The notes under the pieces are model-generated. The model was given only the letters and a program-made list of their open reading frames with translations. It did not search any database and had not been told where the DNA came from. A program made the translations under genes and the position numbers. A DNA stretch of 64,000 bases, taken from IMG/VR virus record IMGVR_UViG_3300042922_000542, positions 182,148 to 246,147 of that record; one strand, 5' to 3'. Each line of letters opens with the position of its first letter. Position 1 is the first letter of the stretch. This document shows, piece by piece, positions 13,253-64,000 of the stretch.

Positions 13253-13594
13253 GTGAATAAAATGTTAATGATTTATTTCATAACAGAAACAGGTAGACCT
13301 TTACCGAATGATACAGTTATATCAGTGCTTGATCGAATGGTGGAGACTAAAAAAATAGAAAAACCACCATATGCAAGTAGAAACGGTATCATCATTAATA
13401 ATGCAGAATATTTATTTAAAAATATTGCTGATAACTGCAATAATGATTTTGACATCGTGTATTATAATGATAACAATGGTAGTTGGAAGGTACTAACAGA
13501 TTCAGAGTTAATGGATTTCGTTATAACGTTAAATAATATGACGGATCAATCAATATTGTCCAGTAAAGTATTAAATAATATTAATAATAATTAA
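13253..13594 (+). CDS. hypothetical protein, paralogue of 13621-13950
   Basis: MIYFITETGRPLPNDT shared with the next gene. Confidence 0.75.
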   Translation: MNKMLMIYFITETGRPLPNDTVISVLDRMVETKKIEKPPYASRNGIIINNAEYLFKNIADNCNNDFDIVYYNDNNGSWKVLTDSELMDFVITLNNMTDQSILSSKVLNNINNN

Positions 13595-17623: not shown

Positions 17624-19411
17624 TTAAACAACTTCACCATATACATCAGCACTGTTAAGCATAACAAGTCTTGCCTGAATACCTTGAACAGAGATATCTT
17701 TGTATCTGCTTGTTGCAGTAACAATTGTATATGCTCCGCCAGGTCTATTAGTTGACTCGTACGCTGTTTGACTTTGTGAAGTCATTAAGTGTGAAGTATA
17801 TTTTAAGTGTTTGAAAGAAATATGTTCGTCATCAGTTGGGTAAGCATAGATTCTAAGAACAAGTTCTTTCTTATTTGTTGGAGCTACAGCTGCATCTGTA
17901 TATGCTTTATATACGTTTGATGCAACAACTCTAACCGGTGCACTCATATCTGTTGCAAAACCATATGAGTTGTTTACAGTGATACCACCAACTGATGCTC
18001 CCTGTTGGTAGTTCCATGTTGTCCATTTAGAAATAAGTTGGCAAGCCATTGGGTTACCAGCGATAACAAAGCTTAAGTTATCCAATTTAGCAGCTTCACA
18101 GAGTTTGTATATCAAACCTTTGATGGCAAATTGAACTGCATTTGCTTTGTATATAAATGGATCTCCAGCAAATCCAACCGGTGCTTTAAGATCAACCACA
18201 TGTTCCTGAACAAGTGATTCCAATTTATAGATGTCAGATTTAGTTCCAGCATATTTCTTATATTCATCATCAAGGAATCTAAGAACATTTTGTCCCTCTA
18301 TCATTTCTTGTGTCTTAACTATTTCATCAACCATTCTGTTGTAATAATTAATATCAAGTAATGCAGCAGCATCTTCGATTTCTTCTATTGAGAAAGGCAT
18401 ATTCCATCTTGCACCGTCTTCAATTGTGAATTTTATCAATTCACGTTTTTCTCTAACAGATACAGTTCTTGTATTTAATTCATTTGATAAATATCCTTCG
18501 AATACAACCCCAGTAACTTGAGCGTTGCAAGCAGATACATTAACAGTACCTTTTTTGAAATCAATTTTACCAGATACGCTATCTTTGATTATGGTTCCAT
18601 CATCTGCAACGAAATCAAGATCGCCATTTACAAATGTACCGCCAGTTGAGAATTCAACAGTAATGCCGTTTCCTTTAAGTTTATAAATTTTAGTAGCAAC
18701 TTCAACAGCAACAATTTTGATATTGTATGATAATCTATCTTGACCAGGTATTCCATCAGTAAGATTGTCAATGATATCATATTGATAAGCTGGTACTGCA
18801 ACTACAGTATCTTTTATTACATGACCTTTAGCAGCATCCCAAATCTTTTCCCATGTTCCATCAAATATACATTTTGGATATTCATACTCGTCACCAGTTG
18901 TATTGTCAACAAGATATGTAGTCTTAATGTGTTTTGCAAGGTTAGGAGTCTTAGTAGTTTCCACTTCAATAACATCTTTTATTATTGATTGGAAGAACTG
19001 TTTAGCAAGAGTTGGAAACTCTAATGTAGCGATCGGTAAGAATGAAAGTGTTGAAGCTGATTCATTGTAACTTCTAACTTTAGCATCCCAAAGTCTTTCA
19101 ACGTTTTCAACAAAGCTTTCAATGTGAGGGTCATTTGCAGATGCATTTCTGAATCCCTCGTATATTGGCTGTAATAGGTCTACCTTGTATGATTCCATAA
19201 ATGCTTTGTCGCCTACCATTGCACCTAAGTCACGTTTAATATCAATACCTACGCGGCTTTTGTAAGATTCATATAACTCATTAAAATTTTCCTGGAATGA
19301 TTTCCCAGATCTTGACACCTCAAATGAACTGCGTGAATTTGCAAGGTTTGGTGTTATTGTACCAGCGGATTCTCCGAACCAAGATCCGTTATTATTTCTT
19401 TGATAACTCAT
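17624..19411 (-). CDS. major capsid protein precursor
   Basis: 595 aa; strongly biased codon usage; own late promoter and terminator; ES-rich N-terminal propeptide; jumbo-phage MCP-like SIEEIEDAAAL and IAGNPMACQLI. Confidence 0.75.
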   Translation of the reverse strand: MSYQRNNNGSWFGESAGTITPNLANSRSSFEVSRSGKSFQENFNELYESYKSRVGIDIKRDLGAMVGDKAFMESYKVDLLQPIYEGFRNASANDPHIESFVENVERLWDAKVRSYNESASTLSFLPIATLEFPTLAKQFFQSIIKDVIEVETTKTPNLAKHIKTTYLVDNTTGDEYEYPKCIFDGTWEKIWDAAKGHVIKDTVVAVPAYQYDIIDNLTDGIPGQDRLSYNIKIVAVEVATKIYKLKGNGITVEFSTGGTFVNGDLDFVADDGTIIKDSVSGKIDFKKGTVNVSACNAQVTGVVFEGYLSNELNTRTVSVREKRELIKFTIEDGARWNMPFSIEEIEDAAALLDINYYNRMVDEIVKTQEMIEGQNVLRFLDDEYKKYAGTKSDIYKLESLVQEHVVDLKAPVGFAGDPFIYKANAVQFAIKGLIYKLCEAAKLDNLSFVIAGNPMACQLISKWTTWNYQQGASVGGITVNNSYGFATDMSAPVRVVASNVYKAYTDAAVAPTNKKELVLRIYAYPTDDEHISFKHLKYTSHLMTSQSQTAYESTNRPGGAYTIVTATSRYKDISVQGIQARLVMLNSADVYGEVV

Positions 19412-20104: not shown

Positions 20105-22855
20105 TTAGATGATTCTAGCAATTTTCTTACCGCCGTCGACACGAAGTAATTTTTTAGTCACTTCACGTTTAATTCTAATTAATTGATATTTTGCAGTATT
20201 ATCACCATTGTTCGCAGCATCTTTAATCTTCTCATCTATAATTTCGAGTTCGGCTTTTAATTCACCGATCATCTCATTACGAATACGAAATTGATTTTTA
20301 TCATTAGTGATTTTGTTGGTGATAGCTAAAAACATAAATACTGGATTGAATAGTAATTTAGCTTTTAATAAAGAGCCGGTCATGATAGCATTCCTAATGG
20401 CTCTATATAAATTCTGCCTTGAACGAGGATCTGCCATTTTTTCTTTCATTTGATTCTCATTCAAATCTTTCCATTGATTAAGCATACCATTTATCCATCC
20501 AACGGTACGAGTTGTTGGTTTCATAAATGTTTTACCAACATTAATTGCACTCTGCACAGTCTTTTTTATTTCCTGTTGCTTTCCACTTAAATTCCTGTCA
20601 ATATCCATCAATGTATCTCTTATCGGATGATCCGATTCTGGTTTAGCAGGTTCTTCAGTTGATTCGATAATCACATCAAATATACTATCGGAATTTGATT
20701 CATTATCGTTTAATAATGGTTCTATATCATCAGAATTGATGATCGATGATTCATTGAATACTTGATTATTTAAAAATGCTTTAGCACTCATAATCATTTG
20801 TACTTCTATGACAGCATATTTTTGTAAAGCTTCATATGCAGTATCATATATACCATCAACATCATCATCTTCATTCATATCCTCAGGACCTTTAGATACC
20901 AACTTAGCATTTATTATATATCGCCAAATTCCACCATTATCATCTCCGGGCAAATCATCACCAAGGTCAACTATTGCAAATGAAATATCATTGGTTGATA
21001 ATTTTTTAAGTGCATTATTAAGTTTAACGATGTTTGATTTTTGAATAACACCTGTTAACATATCGCCTACAAATATTAATGTATCCTCATTATGCATCTC
21101 TTTTTTATCGCCGGCCCAACCGAAATAAGCTTTAATTGGTTCTTCGATTTCAACGCCACCATCAGTGGATTTATAGAAATATTTTAAAATACTATCTGAA
21201 TCAATATTGTCAAAGTGTGTTTGGAAATATTTGCTGGCTAATTCAATATATGGTTTAAGATTCTTTATTGTAGTACCAATTATTTTTGATACCATTTCAC
21301 ATACATATTTGGCCTCTTTTTTAGTCATTACAGCAGCATATGTTATCACACCAACTATTCCAATACCAAATATTACGATGGGTGCAAACAATGTTATCAT
21401 AATTAATGTGGATAATATTGTCATGATAGCACCTTCACTCATAGGTTTAGGTTGAACATCAATACCATCCATTATATCAATAGAAAACATGTCAGTTGAT
21501 TCAGTCTTTGTTTCATCAGATTTGGTATCAACATTATATGACAATGTCGAATGTGTTGAATGATCATCATTACGATGTTTATTAAATGAATTATTATAAG
21601 TATAATAATAATTATTAACTTGACCATCATGTTTTAACGACGGTTTAGAATCATCGTCAACCTTGTCATTATCTTTAACAATAATTTTAGCTGGCGTAAT
21701 ATCATCAGGCACTGGTTGTTTGATATAATCTGTTGGTTTTAAATCAGCATTAATCTCTGTCTCTGGTGCGATAGTAGATTGTTGATCATTATCATCTTCG
21801 CCATATGATAAAATTTGATGCTGTTTCAGATAATCTGGTAATTTACCATATTTTTTATCCCTAGTAGATTCAATTAATCCAGGAATATCTTGTTTAGATA
21901 ATACTTTTTTACTAACAGTTGTTGGGGGTAGCATATCAACGATATCAGCACATGATTCATTTTCAGGAAGTAAACCATCAAATTCTTCATATATCGATAT
22001 TATGTCATCTTCGATTGCTTTGATATCATCAAAATTCTCCAACGTAGTCATATAATATTCTTTAAATGAAATATAATCATGCATATGATTAATTTCTTCT
22101 TCAGTATACTCAATGAATTTCTCTTCATCCATCAGAACTGATTCTTTATGGAGAATAGCATTTTTTAATTTAATTGATTTGACAATACCCTCTAATGACT
22201 CTTCTGTGAATTTCTTTTTTAAGGTATTTAATTTGTCGGAAGGTGATTTAATATCCTTTGATGCTTCCAGCAGCCATTGATATAAGGTTGGATTACCATC
22301 AGAACTATTAACAGCTTCTGATAAAAATTGAAATACTATATCAGCCTTATTATTTCTTTCAGCTGTAATGATAACATCGGGAATCGCAGCTTCACCAAAT
22401 TGAGATAATACCTTAGGTATATTTGAATTGAAATATTCATTATAGTATAATTTAGTATATTCATCATGAGATGCATCCAGTTCATCTTTATATGCCTCAA
22501 ACATAATAAATGAATTTTTATATTCATTCTTAAATGACTCCAACATTTCTTTAGATTCATTATAAATACTAGAATCAATACCACGGTATTTACACTGTTT
22601 GATAGCATTGTCAAATGATTCCATAATACTATCATATTTAATTAACGGGATACCATATTTTTCAATAAATTCTCTAAATGTTTTTACACCATGATTAGAT
22701 GTAATTATATATTCTAGATTTGATGCATAAAGATATGGATCATTTTGTAGAGAATTATTTACGGCTTCAATGTAATTATTAATATCAGATTGCAAGCCTG
22801 AAGATTTAGCTGATTGATACAATAATTTTATATCTTTCAAATTAATCAACTCCAT
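20105..22855 (-). CDS. large putative internal head protein
   Basis: More than 10 xxE-S/A motifs, an internal hydrophobic segment and a C-terminal coiled coil; CACA-N6-TA at 22887-22898. Confidence 0.6.
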   Translation of the reverse strand: MELINLKDIKLLYQSAKSSGLQSDINNYIEAVNNSLQNDPYLYASNLEYIITSNHGVKTFREFIEKYGIPLIKYDSIMESFDNAIKQCKYRGIDSSIYNESKEMLESFKNEYKNSFIMFEAYKDELDASHDEYTKLYYNEYFNSNIPKVLSQFGEAAIPDVIITAERNNKADIVFQFLSEAVNSSDGNPTLYQWLLEASKDIKSPSDKLNTLKKKFTEESLEGIVKSIKLKNAILHKESVLMDEEKFIEYTEEEINHMHDYISFKEYYMTTLENFDDIKAIEDDIISIYEEFDGLLPENESCADIVDMLPPTTVSKKVLSKQDIPGLIESTRDKKYGKLPDYLKQHQILSYGEDDNDQQSTIAPETEINADLKPTDYIKQPVPDDITPAKIIVKDNDKVDDDSKPSLKHDGQVNNYYYTYNNSFNKHRNDDHSTHSTLSYNVDTKSDETKTESTDMFSIDIMDGIDVQPKPMSEGAIMTILSTLIMITLFAPIVIFGIGIVGVITYAAVMTKKEAKYVCEMVSKIIGTTIKNLKPYIELASKYFQTHFDNIDSDSILKYFYKSTDGGVEIEEPIKAYFGWAGDKKEMHNEDTLIFVGDMLTGVIQKSNIVKLNNALKKLSTNDISFAIVDLGDDLPGDDNGGIWRYIINAKLVSKGPEDMNEDDDVDGIYDTAYEALQKYAVIEVQMIMSAKAFLNNQVFNESSIINSDDIEPLLNDNESNSDSIFDVIIESTEEPAKPESDHPIRDTLMDIDRNLSGKQQEIKKTVQSAINVGKTFMKPTTRTVGWINGMLNQWKDLNENQMKEKMADPRSRQNLYRAIRNAIMTGSLLKAKLLFNPVFMFLAITNKITNDKNQFRIRNEMIGELKAELEIIDEKIKDAANNGDNTAKYQLIRIKREVTKKLLRVDGGKKIARII

Positions 22856-22895: not shown

Positions 22896-24644
22896 GTGAG
22901 AGAGGAAATACAAGCAATGGTTAAGACAACTAAAAACAAAAATGAAATCTCTAAGATTAATGAAATTCAAATGCAAAAAATTAAAGTCTTTTATAAGAGA
23001 TCAATTCTTAAATCGATTATGAAGATTCTATTAATGGAGCACTCTGGATATAGAACCGTAAAATCCGTCAAGAATATAAATAGAGTATTTTCAAATCTCG
23101 ATTTAGATTTATACAATAAATCTGCAGAGTTAATTTCTTATATATGGTGTATAAGCAATATAAGTAAAAAATGGTTGGAGGGCATAGTAAATACCGACTT
23201 AATAATTGAATGGTGCAAACGACAAACGGATTTTGATAACATTAAGGAAAATATCATACAGGCATGCATAGATGATCCTCAAATAATATCGGAGCCTGAG
23301 GCAAAGATGATATTTGATCTAATATCAGAGGCGTTACAATTTGGATTTCTGGCTGGAATTAAAAATGAATATTTAGCATTATTAGATGATATTAATTTAG
23401 ATCAACCTGGTGCATTTAAAGAGTTAGCTGAAAGATTATTTTCAATATCCAATTCCGTAATTGATATTAAACATAATACAAATTTCGTATCAAATAAAGT
23501 TACATTTAATACATCTGATATTGATAGTGTTAAACATGCTATATCTCAAACGATTGGTTCTTTATCAGCATCGAATAGTATGCTTAAGACTGGTATACGA
23601 CGTTTAAATACTCTATTATCACCAGCTTATATGAATGGGAGAATTTACATATATTTGGGATTGCCGGCATCATTTAAATCAGGTATTTTATTAAAATCTG
23701 CATTAGATATTCGTAAATATAACCCGGATTTTAAAACAAAGACCCCAGGTCTGAAACCTGCAGTATTATACATAACAATGGAAAATGGATTTACCGAAAC
23801 AATCGAACGTATTTGGAATATGACATTTGATGATGACATTTCAAATTATACGCCAGAAGAAGCTAGTTCTAAAATAATGGAAGAGCTTGGTATCGGCGTA
23901 CCAACTACATATAATCTTGATGACGGTCCAGATAAGATGGCAAAATTAGAAACCGATGGAGCGTCTAATATTGAAATAGTAATAAAATATTTTTCATATA
24001 GAGAAATATGCACTGATGATATATTTACGATTATACAGGATTTGAGAGATAGCGGCCTTGAAGTATGTGCACTTGTATTTGATTATATTAAAAGAATTAG
24101 GCCTAATGTATCTGCAGCAGATAATGTTAAATTGGAACTTGATAGAATATGTAATGAACTAAAAGCAATGTCTGTTATATTAGATATACCTGTTATAACA
24201 GCACACCAGATGAATCGTAGTGCAGCATCGACAGTAGATAATGCAGTCCGAGCTGGAAAAGCCGATGTAACAAAAATGGTTGGCCGTGAAAATGTCGGTA
24301 GTGCATGGGAAGTTATTGAGGTTGCAGACTGGGCATGTGTATTAAATATAGAATATAAACCGGGAACCGATGATAAATATTTAGTATTCAATGTAGTTAA
24401 ACGAAGGAGAATCGATTCTACCGCAGGTGATGTTGCAAAATATACATACTTAGCACATCCATTTGCCAAGGATAACGGATTGCGATTATTAGATGATATT
24501 CACTTGGATAAAGTATTATCATTGCAATCATTAATTAATGACATCGATAATATAGTCGGTAAGGATAAAACAAATGCAGTTCCTAGAGTAAATAAGATAG
24601 AGCAACGAGATTTTATTGAAGATGTTGAATACGATATTGATTAA
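22896..24644 (+). CDS. DnaB-like replicative helicase (start probably ATG 22917)
   Basis: Walker A GLPASFKSG, YITMEN, VFDYI and ITAHQMNR SF4 motifs. Confidence 0.9.
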   Translation: MREEIQAMVKTTKNKNEISKINEIQMQKIKVFYKRSILKSIMKILLMEHSGYRTVKSVKNINRVFSNLDLDLYNKSAELISYIWCISNISKKWLEGIVNTDLIIEWCKRQTDFDNIKENIIQACIDDPQIISEPEAKMIFDLISEALQFGFLAGIKNEYLALLDDINLDQPGAFKELAERLFSISNSVIDIKHNTNFVSNKVTFNTSDIDSVKHAISQTIGSLSASNSMLKTGIRRLNTLLSPAYMNGRIYIYLGLPASFKSGILLKSALDIRKYNPDFKTKTPGLKPAVLYITMENGFTETIERIWNMTFDDDISNYTPEEASSKIMEELGIGVPTTYNLDDGPDKMAKLETDGASNIEIVIKYFSYREICTDDIFTIIQDLRDSGLEVCALVFDYIKRIRPNVSAADNVKLELDRICNELKAMSVILDIPVITAHQMNRSAASTVDNAVRAGKADVTKMVGRENVGSAWEVIEVADWACVLNIEYKPGTDDKYLVFNVVKRRRIDSTAGDVAKYTYLAHPFAKDNGLRLLDDIHLDKVLSLQSLINDIDNIVGKDKTNAVPRVNKIEQRDFIEDVEYDID

Positions 24645-26448: not shown

Positions 26449-27936
26449 TTATAGATCTATTACAGTAAATTTCTTAGATTTTCTTTTTAATAATTCGGCC
26501 CTACTAGAACCCCATGCTCTCAATTGTGGTACAGATGCATCAACTATATCGTACATATATGTATCTTTGCCATCGGATCGTCTTCGTAGCCTACCAGAAA
26601 CCTGTTCAGCCAATATCGGAGATTTAAATTGTTCAGCACATACTAAAACCGATAAATCCTTTACATCAAATCCGGTTCCACTGGATTTAACAGTTGATAT
26701 CAAAATATCAGCTTTACTTTTTACGGCATCATTAACTTCTTTACTATTATGCGAATGTATTGTTCCAACAAAATATTTCGGAAACATCTTTTGAATATGG
26801 TCCGCTAATATTTCAACTGATTCAATTGTAGGGGATAATATCAACATTCTACCGTATGGTATCTTAGATGCAATTTTAACAATTTCTAATATTTTATTAA
26901 CGAATACAGTCTTCCTATTAGGTGGAATGACTAATGCAGTATACTTCGGTATACTAATTCCATATCGCATCCATTTCTTATCTCTTTCATTATATCGCTT
27001 TGATGTAGAAACGCTTTTAATTTCATCATCAGTCAATTCGGATGTAGCCCAATACATAAAACAATTCATATGAGGTTTATGCCCATAAATATTGCCAGGT
27101 TTCCTATTAAATACTGTAGGATCTTTATCTTTAACTCTAAATATTTCTATCGCACTAAACATCTGATGATACAATTTATTTTCTTCTTCTGCAGATCTAC
27201 CGAATGTCGCTGTCAAATACCAGTTATTTTTTATATTTGAGCTTCCATCTATTTTAATTGTATTATGAAAATACATGTGTACTTCATCTATTACCTTAAC
27301 TCCAAATTTATTAGCTTTCATTATTTTTTCTAGATCATATTTTCTATTTAAGCTACTTAGTGTTGCTTGAAGAACTATCGTGAAATCAGTCTTGATATTA
27401 AAGAATTTATTTGGGCTATCGACTTCAGTAATATTACTTTCAGGCACATTAAACATTCTGATCAACGATTCTTTCCACTGTCCCCTGATATTTGTTGTTG
27501 GGACGATTATTAAAGATCTCATACCAATTTCAAGAAGGCATGAAATAGTCATACTTGTTTTACCCGTACCAGGCCCAGCTATAATACCAATATTATTTCC
27601 CTTCTTCGCATTTTCAATTGTAAATCCAATTACATCTTTTTGTAATTGATCCCTTGGCGTAAAGGAGCCACTATCAGGTTTTTTTATAGTTGCATAATCC
27701 CAGTATGTATTAGACTTATCTTCGATTGTAATCTTAAATAAATTTGTCACGATTTTTTCCAATCCGGTTGGTAAATATATAATTTCCTTATCATCATCTC
27801 TATAGATAAAAATGTTATCCATTGTTGAGACTAATTTCTCAATTTCATGGTCTTCAGTTTCAGTATATTCAGTGACTATTAATCTAGATCGCTCTTTAAC
27901 AATTTTCATTTTTAGCACCTTCTTTAATTTATTCAT
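26449..27936 (-). CDS. superfamily 2 DNA helicase (UvsW/ResIII-like; start probably near 27909)
   Basis: PRDQLQ, GPGTGKT, DEVH, LTAT, GTGFD and QVSGRLRR motifs. Confidence 0.9.
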   Translation of the reverse strand: MNKLKKVLKMKIVKERSRLIVTEYTETEDHEIEKLVSTMDNIFIYRDDDKEIIYLPTGLEKIVTNLFKITIEDKSNTYWDYATIKKPDSGSFTPRDQLQKDVIGFTIENAKKGNNIGIIAGPGTGKTSMTISCLLEIGMRSLIIVPTTNIRGQWKESLIRMFNVPESNITEVDSPNKFFNIKTDFTIVLQATLSSLNRKYDLEKIMKANKFGVKVIDEVHMYFHNTIKIDGSSNIKNNWYLTATFGRSAEEENKLYHQMFSAIEIFRVKDKDPTVFNRKPGNIYGHKPHMNCFMYWATSELTDDEIKSVSTSKRYNERDKKWMRYGISIPKYTALVIPPNRKTVFVNKILEIVKIASKIPYGRMLILSPTIESVEILADHIQKMFPKYFVGTIHSHNSKEVNDAVKSKADILISTVKSSGTGFDVKDLSVLVCAEQFKSPILAEQVSGRLRRRSDGKDTYMYDIVDASVPQLRAWGSSRAELLKRKSKKFTVIDL

Positions 27937-43591: not shown

Positions 43592-44002
43592 TTATATGTG
43601 TATGGTACCATTTGTAAAATTATCACCGCGTATAACATCATTAGTACCAAAGAATCGATACTGATATGATGGATCGCAATTCACACAAATTAATTGAAAT
43701 TGTCGTCCTATCTTAGTTTTAGGTCCATAATATTCTAATGGGGCACGACCAACAAAATGGGTTGTTAAATAATTTTGGACTTGAATTTGAGAATCAAATG
43801 TTAATTTATTATCTGCGTCATTTATGAATATAGATTTATCTATGCTATTCGGGATGATTTTGGCTTGTTCAAATGGAATGTTTGGCATCAACGAAGTAGA
43901 GTGGATTTTATAATCTCCAACTGATAGCATATAATAATCTTCACTTATTCGACAACAAGATTGTTCAACTACACGTGGAATACTAATTGATCCTATAAAC
44001 AT
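43592..44002 (-). CDS. hypothetical protein (true start probably ATG 44002)
   Basis: AGGAGG SD precedes MFIGSISIPR; the track's longer N-terminus overlaps the opposite-strand gene. Confidence 0.65.
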   Translation of the reverse strand: MFIGSISIPRVVEQSCCRISEDYYMLSVGDYKIHSTSLMPNIPFEQAKIIPNSIDKSIFINDADNKLTFDSQIQVQNYLTTHFVGRAPLEYYGPKTKIGRQFQLICVNCDPSYQYRFFGTNDVIRGDNFTNGTIHI

Positions 44003-44084
44003 ATTATCGTATCCCCTCCTATATGAATGATATATTATTATAATATAAGTAAAACGAAATTTATTTAAAAAGGAGATAAAAATA

Positions 44085-44426
44085 ATGGGTATTAAGAAGA
44101 AACATTCATTATTAGAACGTTTCATCACTAGAATTGAAACTGACACATCAGTAATTTTTCAATTAAAGGGTAAGCCCGAATATCCAATCGGTGTAGTAAA
44201 AGTAGTTAGACCATTAGAATACAGTAAAATGATGGGAGCAAAAGATTCAATAATTGAATCTCAGAAATCTGAAATTGAAAGGTTAAAAATAATTATATCT
44301 GATAAAGAATCGATAATATCAGATAAAGATTGTAACATTAGAACGTTACAAAATCAAATTGAAGATTTAGAAGATGAAATACGTTTAGAATCTATGACGC
44401 AGCCTAAACCTAAAGAACTTACATAA
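44085..44426 (+). CDS. coiled-coil hypothetical protein
   Basis: AAGGAG SD; heptad repeat IISDKES/IISDKDC. Confidence 0.7.
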   Translation: MGIKKKHSLLERFITRIETDTSVIFQLKGKPEYPIGVVKVVRPLEYSKMMGAKDSIIESQKSEIERLKIIISDKESIISDKDCNIRTLQNQIEDLEDEIRLESMTQPKPKELT

Positions 44427-60620: not shown

Positions 60621-60650
60621 AAATATGATGGGAATTAACCCATCATATTT
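60621..60650 (-). terminator. intrinsic terminator overlapping the sbcD stop
   Basis: AAATATGATGGG/CCCATCATATTT. Confidence 0.75.
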
Positions 60651-61782
60651 TTAATTCTTCATTAATTAAACTACTCAATTCTTCTATGGATATATCAACA
60701 TCGTAATTTTTATTTATGTATCTATGTATTTTATCTTCCAAACATAATGATGCATCCAATATAAAATCAAATTCAGTTTCAATTTCATCTTCTTTTATTA
60801 TAGCATTCAACGACGGTTCATTAAATATGCATGTTATTGATTTATCTTCAATTAATAGTGATTTTATATTTTCCTTAAATGAAGCGTCAATATTATTTGG
60901 GAATTTAAATTTCAATCGAATCTTACCAATTTTATTACCATTGAATATATCTTCATGCATCGATTTGATTTTATTTACTTCGCTAACAAGTTTATTCATA
61001 TCACTATATAATTCGGAATCTTCATCAAATGTATATGTTTTGTATAAATACGCTTCATTATTTTCAACAAAAGTAAATTTATTATCTTCAATTATACCAT
61101 AACCCTTGGCTTCCTCTTCACCAAATGAATTCCTAAATAAAGATCCGACATAATAACATTCATCATTCATATCACAATATGTATGATAATGACCAAATAA
61201 ACATATGTCTGATATTGATGATAATTCATTCGACTTAAATATCGGAACTTTTTTCTCCTTAGATGTTGAAGCATATTCAACGGGATTCACCATGGTCATA
61301 CCTTCGGCTATCACACCATGCCCAAATATATAATTATATCTTTTATCGGAATAAAGATAATCTTTATAATATTCAAATTTATCATCAACATATTCCTCAG
61401 GTAAATATAATACATTGATATTTGGATATATTTCTTCTTCAGTAACAGTAGTTATTAATTTAATATCAATTGATTTATTGGTAAAATGATAATTGAATAA
61501 ACGATATTGTTGCATTTCATGGCTTTCAGTCCCATATACAATTCTTATTTTTGTTTTTGATTTTTTACATAACCTGATAAGGTATGACATAACGTTTATA
61601 GCTAATGATGTGCAATCATCATTAACCTTAAACAACTTATCAAAATAATCACCTAATATTACAACTACATCTGTATGATTAAATACTAATTCTTTATCTA
61701 ATATATCTGTAATTATATTATACACATAATTCGTATCTTTTATGGATCCGATATGAATATCTGCAAAGTTCAAAATTCTCAT
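60643..61782 (-). CDS. sbcD: SbcD/Mre11-like nuclease (T4 gp47-like)
   Basis: ADIHIG, LGDYFD, GTESHE, FGHG, FGHYH, YVGS..FGE. Confidence 0.88.
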   Translation of the reverse strand: MRILNFADIHIGSIKDTNYVYNIITDILDKELVFNHTDVVVILGDYFDKLFKVNDDCTSLAINVMSYLIRLCKKSKTKIRIVYGTESHEMQQYRLFNYHFTNKSIDIKLITTVTEEEIYPNINVLYLPEEYVDDKFEYYKDYLYSDKRYNYIFGHGVIAEGMTMVNPVEYASTSKEKKVPIFKSNELSSISDICLFGHYHTYCDMNDECYYVGSLFRNSFGEEEAKGYGIIEDNKFTFVENNEAYLYKTYTFDEDSELYSDMNKLVSEVNKIKSMHEDIFNGNKIGKIRLKFKFPNNIDASFKENIKSLLIEDKSITCIFNEPSLNAIIKEDEIETEFDFILDASLCLEDKIHRYINKNYDVDISIEELSSLINEELKI

Positions 61783-61844: not shown

Positions 61845-61879
61845 AAATAAATGAGGGGATTAAAACCCCTCATTTATTT
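61845..61879 (-). terminator. intrinsic terminator
   Basis: AAATAAATGAGGGG/CCCCTCATTTATTT. Confidence 0.8.
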
Positions 61880-62057
61880 CTCTTGGTATATCATTAATAT
61901 TTTTTACTACTCGTTTTATACGGGGTGCAGTCCAGCTATGTGATAATCCATGTTCTTTATCACATATGATCTCACGATCAGTTACGAATTTGGTATCATA
62001 TTGATCAAGATCATCAGATGTTATGGTATCCGGTTTATCATCATTAATCATTTCCAT
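61860..62057 (-). CDS. small hypothetical protein
   Basis: GGAGG SD. Confidence 0.65.
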   Translation of the reverse strand: MEMINDDKPDTITSDDLDQYDTKFVTDREIICDKEHGLSHSWTAPRIKRVVKNINDIPREINEGF

Positions 62058-62106: not shown

Positions 62107-63543
62107 TTAATATACCTTAAAATTACCATAGTCGACAACTACCATTTTACCATTAATAAAACCAACATTGTCTTCATGCATATCAGCAGTTTGTAATCTT
62201 ATATTTTTATTCTTAAGTGATTTTTCTAATTGCTGTTCAAATTTTCTCATATCATCAAAATCAATATTACGTCGAATTGAAGCTTTTGGAACAATTACAT
62301 ATATACCGCTTTCTGAACTTTCATCTGTCGGTAATGCAAATTTATCAGCAACATCAATATCCTTAGATACAATATTTTTTATCTTTAGATCAAGTTTATT
62401 GTCAAATATACCTTTTCTGTTCCAAGCATATTTATAAACAAATTTATCCCGATCATTAGTTAAAACTGCAATACGGGTTGCTCCACTTGGTGCATCTGAA
62501 ACATCTCTGATCCATTTCTTCGTTTTACATGTTATTATGATAAAAGGTTTAACGATGCTATATGCTCGCATGGTATTTTTAATATCAGAATGTAATATGA
62601 TATGTTCTATTATATCACCGAGCATCTTTCGATCCCGTATTGCAGCTAATTCGAAGTTATCAAATGGATTTTGATATTTAAATGCTATGCATAAATCTAT
62701 ATCTCTTAATACAATATTAATCATATTAAGTGCTGTAGCTAATCCATTTAATATATCAGAAAAATATGGATCGATATTTGGATCATTTTCCATTTCTTTT
62801 ACTTCGGGCATATTTAAGATATTTACAATATGTTCAGTTAACTCATTAGCTTCAGGAAAAAATTCGGCAGTATCTATAGTAAAGTCATAAGAACCTTTAC
62901 GGAATATAGGTATTGTCCTACCAGTGTCACCTAATCTCAATCTTGCTGCTTGAATTAATCCAACATTATCAAATTTAGATTTGATTAATGGTACAACATA
63001 TCGATCAACGATCTTTTTATATTCAGCGATATTGATAATTAGACTACGATCTAATTCAATTATAGCCTCTCCGTTCGACATTTTTATAATGGTTCCAGGT
63101 CCACTGCTATTTACAGTATCTTTGATATCAAAACCATCTTTCGCCTTATTTGCAAAATCTTCAGCTTTCATATTTTTGTATTCAACAGGAATAGCACGTT
63201 TTCTAAAAGGCTTGCGTTCATGTTTAATACCAACTGAATCTAATGCACTTATGACTGTATTTTCGGTTTCTTCCATTTCCTTAATCTGTTTTTCTGCCTT
63301 AGGTTTAAATATATTTTTAATAGAATCACGGATTCGTTTAGCCAATTCAATGATCTTTTTAATTAACCATTTGATTCCTTTAGCTATACTATCGACTCCT
63401 TTACTTATATTTTTACCAATAGTTGATTCCTCAAGTAACATGAGTTCGGCGTCAATATAAGAGAAGTGCTCAGTTATTAAAGAATCATATTCTGTAGATA
63501 GGGATGACTCCTCTGCATCCCTTAAATAAAATTTGTAGCACAC
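62107..63543 (-). CDS. head-protein-type ORF with C-terminal protein-kinase-like domain; probably made as a -1 frameshift extension of the upstream gene
   Basis: SGATRIAV, VYKY, DMHEDN, DYG; no good SD or start codon; overlaps the upstream stop in the -1 frame. Confidence 0.75.
   Translation of the reverse strand: MCYKFYLRDAEESSLSTEYDSLITEHFSYIDAELMLLEESTIGKNISKGVDSIAKGIKWLIKKIIELAKRIRDSIKNIFKPKAEKQIKEMEETENTVISALDSVGIKHERKPFRKRAIPVEYKNMKAEDFANKAKDGFDIKDTVNSSGPGTIIKMSNGEAIIELDRSLIINIAEYKKIVDRYVVPLIKSKFDNVGLIQAARLRLGDTGRTIPIFRKGSYDFTIDTAEFFPEANELTEHIVNILNMPEVKEMENDPNIDPYFSDILNGLATALNMINIVLRDIDLCIAFKYQNPFDNFELAAIRDRKMLGDIIEHIILHSDIKNTMRAYSIVKPFIIITCKTKKWIRDVSDAPSGATRIAVLTNDRDKFVYKYAWNRKGIFDNKLDLKIKNIVSKDIDVADKFALPTDESSESGIYVIVPKASIRRNIDFDDMRKFEQQLEKSLKNKNIRLQTADMHEDNVGFINGKMVVVDYGNFKVY
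63460..63534 (-). promoter_or_regulatory. programmed -1 ribosomal frameshift signal (slippery heptamer plus H-type pseudoknot)
   Basis: A_AAU_UUU (63534-63528), 5-nt spacer, S1 AGGGAUG/CAUCCCU, S2 AGAGGAGU/ACUUCUCU. Confidence 0.75.
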
Positions 63544-64000
63544 TCTGTCAATGTTGATTCATTAATAACAATGCCTTTCCCTAAACGAAGTCTTGTTGTA
63601 TATTCATTCAGTGATGCACCTTTTTGTCTAAACATATCATCAAACTGATTCAATGTAGATTCTCTTATTGCTAATCCAATAGTTTCATCTTGGGATCCAA
63701 CATCTTGTGAATTTTTCATAGACCATTCTGATATATAATCCATTGCAACTTTAAAACTGGAGGATTCAGTTTTAATATTAAAGGACATATCACTCTCATC
63801 CTTCTTATCTTTTAACAACTCAGAAATATCAGCAACAATTTTATTTACAGTTTTCTTCTTTAATTTTTCAATAAAATCTTCATATTCAACGTCTTTCTTA
63901 ACATCAATAAGCTGATTTTCCATATCATCATCTTGATCAGAAATCGGTTCAGGTGGGACATCTAAACCATCATCAGCATCTTCTTTTAATTTTTCCATAG
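63522..64000 (-). CDS. 3' part of a putative head protein (probably begins beyond the window)
   Basis: Acidic, with KTESS, IREST and INEST motifs. Confidence 0.7.
   Translation of the reverse strand, partial: MEKLKEDADDGLDVPPEPISDQDDDMENQLIDVKKDVEYEDFIEKLKKKTVNKIVADISELLKDKKDESDMSFNIKTESSSFKVAMDYISEWSMKNSQDVGSQDETIGLAIRESTLNQFDDMFRQKGASLNEYTTRLRLGKGIVINESTLTECATNFI

Follow-up and report, generated by a model that had tools for sequence, protein, structure and literature searches.

The window analysed here is a stretch of 64,000 nucleotides (nt), the last 64 kb of a 246,147-bp IMG/VR contig (IMGVR_UViG_3300042922_000542, positions 182,148 to 246,147). Near its right end two overlapping open reading frames (ORF), named ORF1 and ORF2, lie on the minus strand, and a candidate signal for programmed -1 frameshifting lies where they meet. 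We regard it as quite probable, from sequence comparison, that the two are one gene, whose kinase-like extension is joined to ORF1 by a programmed -1 frameshift. The 3' end of ORF1 reads, on the minus strand, GCU ACA AAU UUU AUU UAA. It contains the heptamer A_AAU_UUU (63534-63528) in the X_XXY_YYZ phase of ORF1, and stem 1 of a hairpin begins 5 nt later, as the original prediction, made from the letters alone, had described. All coordinates and sequence features given there were correct, including the gene end, the heptamer, the spacer, stem 1 and the complementarity of the loop. The -1 frame is closed by TGA at 63561-63559 and open from 63558 to the stop at 62107-62109, and about 473-475 codons lie between the heptamer and this stop. 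The 0 and -1 frames overlap by 12 codons, in which A_AAU_UUU is the sole in-phase heptamer. In the genes of the window, in-phase X_XXY_YYZ occurs at 0.57% of codons and AAAUUUU at 0.03%; about 0.004 AAAUUUU are expected by chance in a 12-codon overlap. A_AA.U_UU.U falls in the class H_HH.U_UU.Y, which together with R_RR.U_UU.Y is reported among the motifs efficient in E. coli (PMC4066793). The 0-frame and -1-frame pieces were searched separately throughout.

The contig ends share 127 identical bp (63874-64000 of the window and L012:3883-4009; L and P numbers are our own labels for loci and proteins), so the 246-kb genome is circular in the assembly. ORF1 is cut by the contig end, and its apparent ATG at 63998 is an internal Met. 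Joined across the contig ends, ORF1 encodes about 289 amino acids (aa), starts with an ATG behind the strong Shine-Dalgarno sequence AAGGAGA, and aligns full-length to the ORF1 of L003 (287 aa).

No comparable start was found for ORF2. The two candidate starts, GTG at 63543 and ATG at 63441, are without Shine-Dalgarno pairing (+0.4 and +0.1 kcal/mol), against a median of -8.75 kcal/mol for 52 ORFs of the window, nearly all of which have a strong GGAG-type sequence. The claim that ORF2 has no convincing Shine-Dalgarno sequence or start of its own is thus borne out. Between the heptamer and the annotated starts lies a -1-frame linker, which can be aligned with the leaders, likewise in the -1 frame, of L002, L003, L020 and L004. 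The leaders of the split loci comprise about 29-33 codons and have no conserved start codon. In single-frame homologues (L005 and L019; P0005, P0006 and P0095) they also align, to a linker inside the protein. The position of the first Met of ORF2 varies among lineages, and in L020 it is replaced by Ile. Because the linker aligns to the interior of single-frame proteins and the Met is not conserved, the stretch from the heptamer to the annotated ORF2 starts is, judged by its conservation, translated, and it is reachable only through ORF1.

Close relatives of ORF2 fell into five clusters among 5.8 billion proteins. P0002, P0003 and P0004 showed 38-45% identity with ORF2, and each has an ORF1 homologue just upstream and ORF2 in the -1 frame. 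An identical in-phase AAAUUUU was found at homologous codons in L002, L003/L020, L004/L008, L018 and L019, and in the first three groups, the split ones, the 0-frame stop lies 1-4 codons past it. The heptamer is therefore kept in phase in the relatives, in keeping with the original prediction. In L002 and L003 the -1-frame TGA ends right before the heptamer and the 0-frame stop lies one codon after it; because the -1 frame opens exactly at the heptamer, the frame change in these loci is confined to 10 nt. The same architecture recurs in L008 and L020, which were assembled independently, from other samples, and represent the L004 and L003 phages respectively. With the window counted, the split arrangement was found in six independent assemblies. 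Further scans with ORF2 added little: IMG/VR gave the source contig only, metagenomes gave only L008 (the same phage as L004), genome contigs gave nothing, and a second word-index protein search with the ORF2 alignment gave no further relatives.

The hairpin downstream of the heptamer has a 7-bp stem and a 9-nt loop in the window, with a folding energy of -10.5 kcal/mol (z = -2.2; 19 of 500 shuffles equally good). Stems begin 5-6 nt past the heptamer in the window, L002, L003 and L004. The energies were -15.2 kcal/mol (z = -3.8) in L002, -14.0 kcal/mol (z = -3.1) in L003, and -19.5 kcal/mol (z = -5.1) in L004, of which the stem sequence is unlike that of the window. In an alignment of the hairpins of the window, L002, L003, L020 and L018, 95.5% of cells were paired, compared with at most 61% in slid controls. 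Two pairs carry compensatory double changes between the window and the L002/L003 group, one from A-U to G-C and one from G-C to A-U. The covariation in related phages that had been suggested as a check thus came out in favour of stem 1. A GGUGA Shine-Dalgarno-like element was found 8-9 nt 5' of the heptamer in L002, L003, L018 and L020, and the corresponding element of L019 is GGUGGAUC; the window (63535-63560) and L004 have only a weak form of it.

Other relatives keep the same protein without the split. P0005 and P0006 (757 aa, from GC-rich phages) contain the ORF1-like and ORF2-like parts in one frame, and the junction has no heptamer. In-frame relatives without a junction heptamer are located at L005, L023 and L025. 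In the L019 protein P0095 (707 aa), ORF1 and a more distant ORF2-like domain are fused in frame, and here the in-phase A_AAU_UUU is followed by a 15-bp hairpin. A -1 slip in L019 would read AAA UUU UAA and stop immediately. Judged from its sequence, the same signal would truncate the L019 protein and give a short ORF1-only form as in dnaX. In the ORF1 tree, L019 was grouped with the clade of the window, L002 and L003 (support 100/100), and L004 fell in another clade, surrounded by forms that stand alone or carry different extensions.

Taken together, the conserved heptamer, phase, spacer and stem, the contiguous single-frame homologues and the missing initiation signal of ORF2 uphold the programmed -1 frameshift that the original prediction proposed. 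In the mechanism we envisage, a ribosome at A_AAU_UUU would hold tRNA-Asn in the P site and tRNA-Phe in the A site, with the hairpin 5 nt downstream placed at the mRNA entrance. Most ribosomes would probably stay in frame, read AUU and the UAA stop, and release the ORF1 protein of about 289 aa. A fraction would slip one base back (AAU to AAA, UUU to UUU), with UAU as the next codon. These ribosomes would go on for about 473 codons and produce an ORF1-ORF2 fusion of about 760 aa (...ATNF-YLRD...), which carries the helical region and the kinase-like domain. The site would thereby set the ratio of the bare conserved protein to the cargo-bearing form. We infer the slippage, its efficiency and the short product as the major form. 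We consider transcriptional slippage at this site unlikely, because the runs are only A3 and U4.

Several points weigh against the frameshift reading. The support for it is comparative and computational as a whole. Conserved x-Asn-Phe residues and AT-rich codons would yield the heptamer by chance in about one quarter of cases per lineage, and since this combination gives the heptamer so often, the conservation of the heptamer is partly explained by protein constraint. In the databases searched there are only about four independent lineages. The hairpin of the window is the weakest of the set by z score, and the spacer in L019 is just 3 nt. The shift efficiency may be different in the host of this phage, with its own tRNA pool. 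L018, the ORF1 of which is 88% identical to that of L003, has lost ORF2 by deletion. At L018:934-1339 the leader from the junction has been joined to the C-terminal half of the small gene which usually comes after ORF2; the frame is now +1, and the altered heptamer region reads AAAUUUUUUAUAGGGAU. L018 may be a decaying relic or a low-coverage assembly.

If ORF1 and ORF2 were two separate genes, ORF2 would start from Met 63441 or GTG 63543, perhaps by termination-reinitiation, and the heptamer and hairpin would be incidental. Gene callers do annotate the ORF2 homologues apart, at various Met codons, and distant ORF2-like proteins of about 500 aa are encoded by stand-alone genes with their own Shine-Dalgarno sequence, as in P0007 (L021), the one relative checked; most ORF1 homologues likewise stand alone and are followed by a terminator. 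However, both candidate starts are without a Shine-Dalgarno sequence, although a strong one precedes almost every gene of this genome, the position of the Met is not conserved, about 29 codons 5' of it are conserved as protein and align to single-frame interiors, and every split locus has ORF2 in the -1 frame with the same heptamer. We consider two separate genes improbable. Alternatively, a frameshift mutation or assembly error may have split a once single-frame gene, with ORF2 now decaying or rescued by low-level slippage. The single-frame versions (P0005, P0006, P0095 and P0125), the position of the junction in a short, indel-prone A3U4 run and the decay and deletion of ORF2 in L018 are what such a history would leave. 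It is nevertheless very improbable: the split is found in the six independent assemblies and in two well-separated ORF1 clades, and a stable stem at the right spacing is kept with different sequences. Across the split lineages about 70 ORF2 positions are invariant, catalytic-type motifs included, so ORF2 is still under selection. Assembly error in particular, a 1-nt case of which was one of the alternatives named with the original prediction, is ruled out, since independent assemblies from different samples agree.

A tail assembly chaperone frameshift of the G/GT type would also be a -1 frameshift in a phage gene, and the recoded gene does lie two genes downstream of a tail-tube-like virion protein (phrog_21400, phrog_45). 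We hold this to be extremely improbable, because the recoded gene comes after a protein of about 950 aa and does not lie in the interval from tube to tape measure, its two parts (about 290 aa for ORF1, about 475 aa and kinase-like for ORF2) greatly exceed G and T in size, the frameshift is missing from most ORF1 homologues, and no chaperone match was found in Pfam or PHROGs. There remains the case of a real frameshift that is stimulated by an H-type pseudoknot instead of the hairpin, as originally proposed. The complementarity exists: AGAGGAGU (63514-63507) in the loop matches ACUUCUCU (63467-63460) over 8 bp with one G-U, and the geometry is possible, with a loop 1 of 1 nt, a coaxial junction and a loop 3 of 32 nt. 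But a match of this quality between a 9-nt loop and the next 100 nt was equalled or beaten in 10.9% of dinucleotide shuffles, which is within chance. In L002, L003 and L020 the stems are 9 bp and the loops 5 nt, so that a counterpart of stem 2 is impossible; loop-to-downstream pairing in these three was no better than chance, being matched in 72-89% of shuffles. The extended stems of L004 and L019 are of unrelated sequence, and in the minimum-free-energy fold of RNAfold the 63460-63467 arm falls inside a competing local hairpin. The pseudoknot is therefore rejected as neither beyond chance nor conserved, and a frameshift that depends on it is unlikely. As far as the aligned sequences indicate, the conserved putative stimulator is a plain hairpin. 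Coordinates of all features are collected in Table 1.

Table 1. Positions of the features at the ORF1/ORF2 junction and at related loci (window positions unless a locus or protein is named).
Feature	Position	Strand	Basis or remark
ORF1 3' part, 0 frame, last 158 codons and stop	63522..64000	minus	gene continues past the circular junction
Putative slippery heptamer A_AAU_UUU, X_XXY_YYZ phase of ORF1	63528..63534	minus	sequence; same in-phase heptamer in relatives
Spacer AUUUA, 5 nt, overlapping 0-frame AUU and UAA	63523..63527	minus	also 5 nt in L002/L003; about 6 nt in L004
ORF1 0-frame stop UAA, one codon past the heptamer	63522..63524	minus	sequence
Putative stimulatory hairpin, 7-bp stem and 9-nt loop	63500..63522	minus	AGGGAUG (63522-63516) with CAUCCCU (63506-63500)
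Claimed 3' arm of stem 2, ACUUCUCU	63460..63467	minus	complementarity present, functional role not supported
-1-frame linker, about 29 codons (YLRDAEE...IDAEL), no start codon	63442..63528	minus	conserved as protein
ORF2 as it would be decoded after the slip, about 473 codons and stop	62107..63528	minus	N-terminal two thirds helical, C-terminus kinase-like (predicted)
Kinase-like C-terminal domain, about residues 345-478 of the 478-aa ORF	62110..62511	minus	conserved motifs, Foldseek
Small gene and calcineurin-like metallophosphoesterase	60643-61782, 61860-62057; L019:6386-7639; L018:1229-1339		
L019 signal, in-phase A_AAU_UUU and 15-bp hairpin	L019:4870-4925		-21.7 kcal/mol, z = -7.5
Upstream GGUGA/GGUGG element	L002:663-668; L003:2374-2378; also L020, L018, L019		dnaX-like spacing
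AR9 gp210	L026:8624-9454		syntenic and best predicted-fold counterpart of ORF1
ORF1-family proteins with other extensions	P0096-P0098, P0163, P0164, P0188; L023:459-1889		

The AlphaFold2 model of ORF2 has a mean predicted local distance difference test (pLDDT) of 75.6, and values are above 85 over most of the C-terminal third. In sequence, the C-terminus matches only phrog_4301, a family of unknown function. An exhaustive profile search gave 89 relatives, most of them about 500 aa long and with the C-terminal domain in common. Residues G354, R357, K371, D454, N459 (in close relatives) and D471-Y472 are invariant or nearly so. K371, D454-x4-N459 and D471-Y-G stand in kinase-like order and spacing, and vary little or not at all among 6 close and 34 distant sequences. 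In a Foldseek search with the predicted model as query, the top 50 PDB matches were all protein kinases, including Lpg2603, Mps1, Rio2, DYRK1A, Bud32 and NleH2 (probability about 1, E values 0.007-0.04). About 140-150 columns were aligned, and the template modelling (TM) scores were about 0.2 when normalised to the query and 0.48 when normalised to NleH2. Foldseek gives no query range, and the kinase match is placed at the C-terminus by the motifs together with weak sequence matches to KSR kinases at profile positions 421-482.

ORF2 did not match the Pfam kinase models. Its chain ends 7 residues past D-Y-G, and all relatives end 5-10 residues past it. The usual kinase C-lobe may be missing, or may be supplied by the preceding helices (residues about 225-341). 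Of the kinase extension in the original prediction, the predicted fold and the Lys, D-x4-N and D-Y-G motifs stand in favour, and the missing Pfam match and the chain end after the DFG-like motif stand against. The modelled C-terminus may reasonably be called kinase-like and is at most a putative kinase.

ORF2 was also compared with other phage proteins. ORF2 of the window did not match PF12699 (phiKZ-like internal head proteins), and two distant ORF2-like proteins scored 20.7 and 15.1 bits, below the cut-off of 27. ORF2 as a phiKZ-type internal head protein was rejected, with an hhalign probability below 1% for the family against gp95/gp96. Kinship with the AR9 gp209 'kinase', which adjoins gp210, was tested and rejected. 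A stand-alone kinase-like relative gave a tblastn match (E value 7e-3) in Sphingobium phage Lacusarx, close to a 'DNA transfer protein', which was too weak to use.

The ORF1 family comprises more than 115 clusters on contigs of up to 293 kb, and was absent from GenBank phages by tblastn. Most homologues stand alone, at about 300 aa and without a frameshift, and an intrinsic terminator comes after the gene. ORF1 had no assignment in Pfam and PHROGs, and matched no head family or chaperone there. Its AlphaFold2 model (pLDDT 77.5) is all-helical, and a fold search against PDB gave only generic helical bundles with E values of 1 or more. The best viral fold match was AR9 gp210 (BFVD A0A172JIA4, 276 aa), with TM scores of 0.52-0.54 and probability 1.0. 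The ORF1 profile matched the gp210 sequence marginally (hhalign E value 0.007, probability 5%). The AR9 gene order of gp212 (a tube-like virion protein), gp211 (about 900 aa, phrog_18960, homologue of the 954-aa neighbour here) and gp210 mirrors the order in the window, in which a tail-tube-like virion protein and the protein of about 950 aa (the 954-aa neighbour) precede ORF1/ORF2. ORF1 is a conserved and, from its predicted structure, all-helical protein of about 290 aa of AR9-like jumbo phages.

The original prediction had taken ORF1 for a head protein, which did not hold: the major capsid protein is encoded elsewhere, at 17624-19411, the head families of Pfam and PHROGs gave no match, and gp210 is annotated as 'hypothetical protein', with neighbouring genes annotated as 'virion structural protein'. 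The further idea that a minority of the protein carries an enzymatic payload into the capsid and so sets cargo copy number is speculation and unsupported. The C-terminal in-frame extensions of the ORF1 family vary, and include a Cys-rich module of about 75 aa, a leucine-rich repeat (PF13306), SUKH/SMI1-type domains (PF14567, PF09346 and PF14568) and PF09234. ORF1 resembles a carrier module whose cargo can be exchanged.

Among known systems, the site can be set beside E. coli dnaX, in which A_AAA_AAG, a downstream hairpin and an upstream Shine-Dalgarno-like element produce tau and gamma. Both have a bacterial-type heptamer with a simple stem-loop a few nt downstream, and here, as in dnaX, two isoforms of one protein would result at a set ratio. 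The slip to an immediate stop in L019 and the upstream GGUGA of L002, L003, L018 and L020 are further likenesses. Unlike dnaX, the heptamer is A_AAU_UUU, the slip would extend the protein in the window, L002, L003 and L004, the upstream element is weak in the window, and the proteins are unrelated. In T7 gene 10 (10A/10B), too, a -1 slip near the gene end adds a C-terminal extension to a minority product; that gene encodes the major capsid protein and the extension is short, whereas ORF1 is no recognisable capsid protein and its extension exceeds the base protein in size and has an enzyme-like domain. With G/GT of lambda and other tailed phages the site shares a -1 frameshift in a double-stranded DNA phage that gives a short and a C-terminally extended product, but it differs in gene position, protein sizes (about 290 and 760 aa) and families, and the frameshift is limited to a small subclade of ORF1. 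In the transposase frameshift orfA-orfAB of the IS3/IS911 family, a bacterial heptamer and a downstream structure likewise fuse two overlapping ORFs, of which the downstream one has no start of its own. Insertion sequence (IS) elements mostly use A_AAA_AAG or A_AAA_AAA, often with a pseudoknot (PMC4066793). The proteins there are unrelated to ours, and the present locus is not a mobile element.

In predicted fold and in the spacing of Lys, D-x4-N and D-Y-G, the ORF2 C-terminus is like the Rio, Bud32, NleH and Legionella Lpg2603 kinases; unlike such minimal kinases, it has no Pfam match and stops soon after the DFG-like motif. AR9 gp210, in contrast to ORF1 here, has neither a frameshift extension nor a kinase-like cargo. 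The signal is of a known type of recoding, here in a gene family new to it.

Among the products of the contig are a multisubunit RNA polymerase beta subunit, a tail sheath protein, a terminase and a major capsid protein, the last with about 23% identity with those of Bacillus phage AR9/PBS1 and Staphylococcus jumbo phages. The source is an uncultured jumbo phage and a distant kin of AR9. Megablast and tblastn of the region, ORF1 and ORF2 gave no match in GenBank phages, an Rfam scan of 63300-63700 gave no family, and we found nothing relevant in the literature on jumbo-phage frameshifting and on AR9 gp210. Downstream of ORF2, several relatives keep the same order of a small gene of 53-68 aa and a calcineurin-like metallophosphoesterase. 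Elsewhere in the window, five listed ORF starts are without a Shine-Dalgarno sequence (20105-22855, 22896-24644, 26449-27936, 43592-44146 and 13253-13594); their real starts are probably elsewhere, or they have another mode of expression.

As to the meaning of the locus, this would be a comparatively well-supported -1 frameshift beyond the usual phage cases of tail chaperones, capsid extensions and IS transposases, and it comes from an uncultured phage group without close relatives in culture. Annotation pipelines break the gene in two and place the start of ORF2 wrongly. Across the lineages the relatives form a rare natural series, in which the slip would add cargo, the slip would remove cargo (L019), the cargo is in frame with no signal, the C-terminal modules are swapped, or the cargo is absent; such a series informs how frameshift signals arise and flip polarity. 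Considering this series, we might tentatively speculate, at somewhat less than even chance, that the heptamer and hairpin form a recoding switch, conserved and reversible, exactly at the boundary between modules of an AR9-like jumbo-phage core protein, and that this boundary doubles as a dosage controller and an inter-phage cargo-exchange site. The counterpart gp210 in AR9 offers a cultivable system and a way into an uncharacterised core jumbo-phage gene. The optional kinase-like extension suggests a regulatory or host-manipulating role, and if the switch reading is true, jumbo phages would bring a signalling enzyme, in a fixed and sub-stoichiometric amount, to wherever ORF1 acts.

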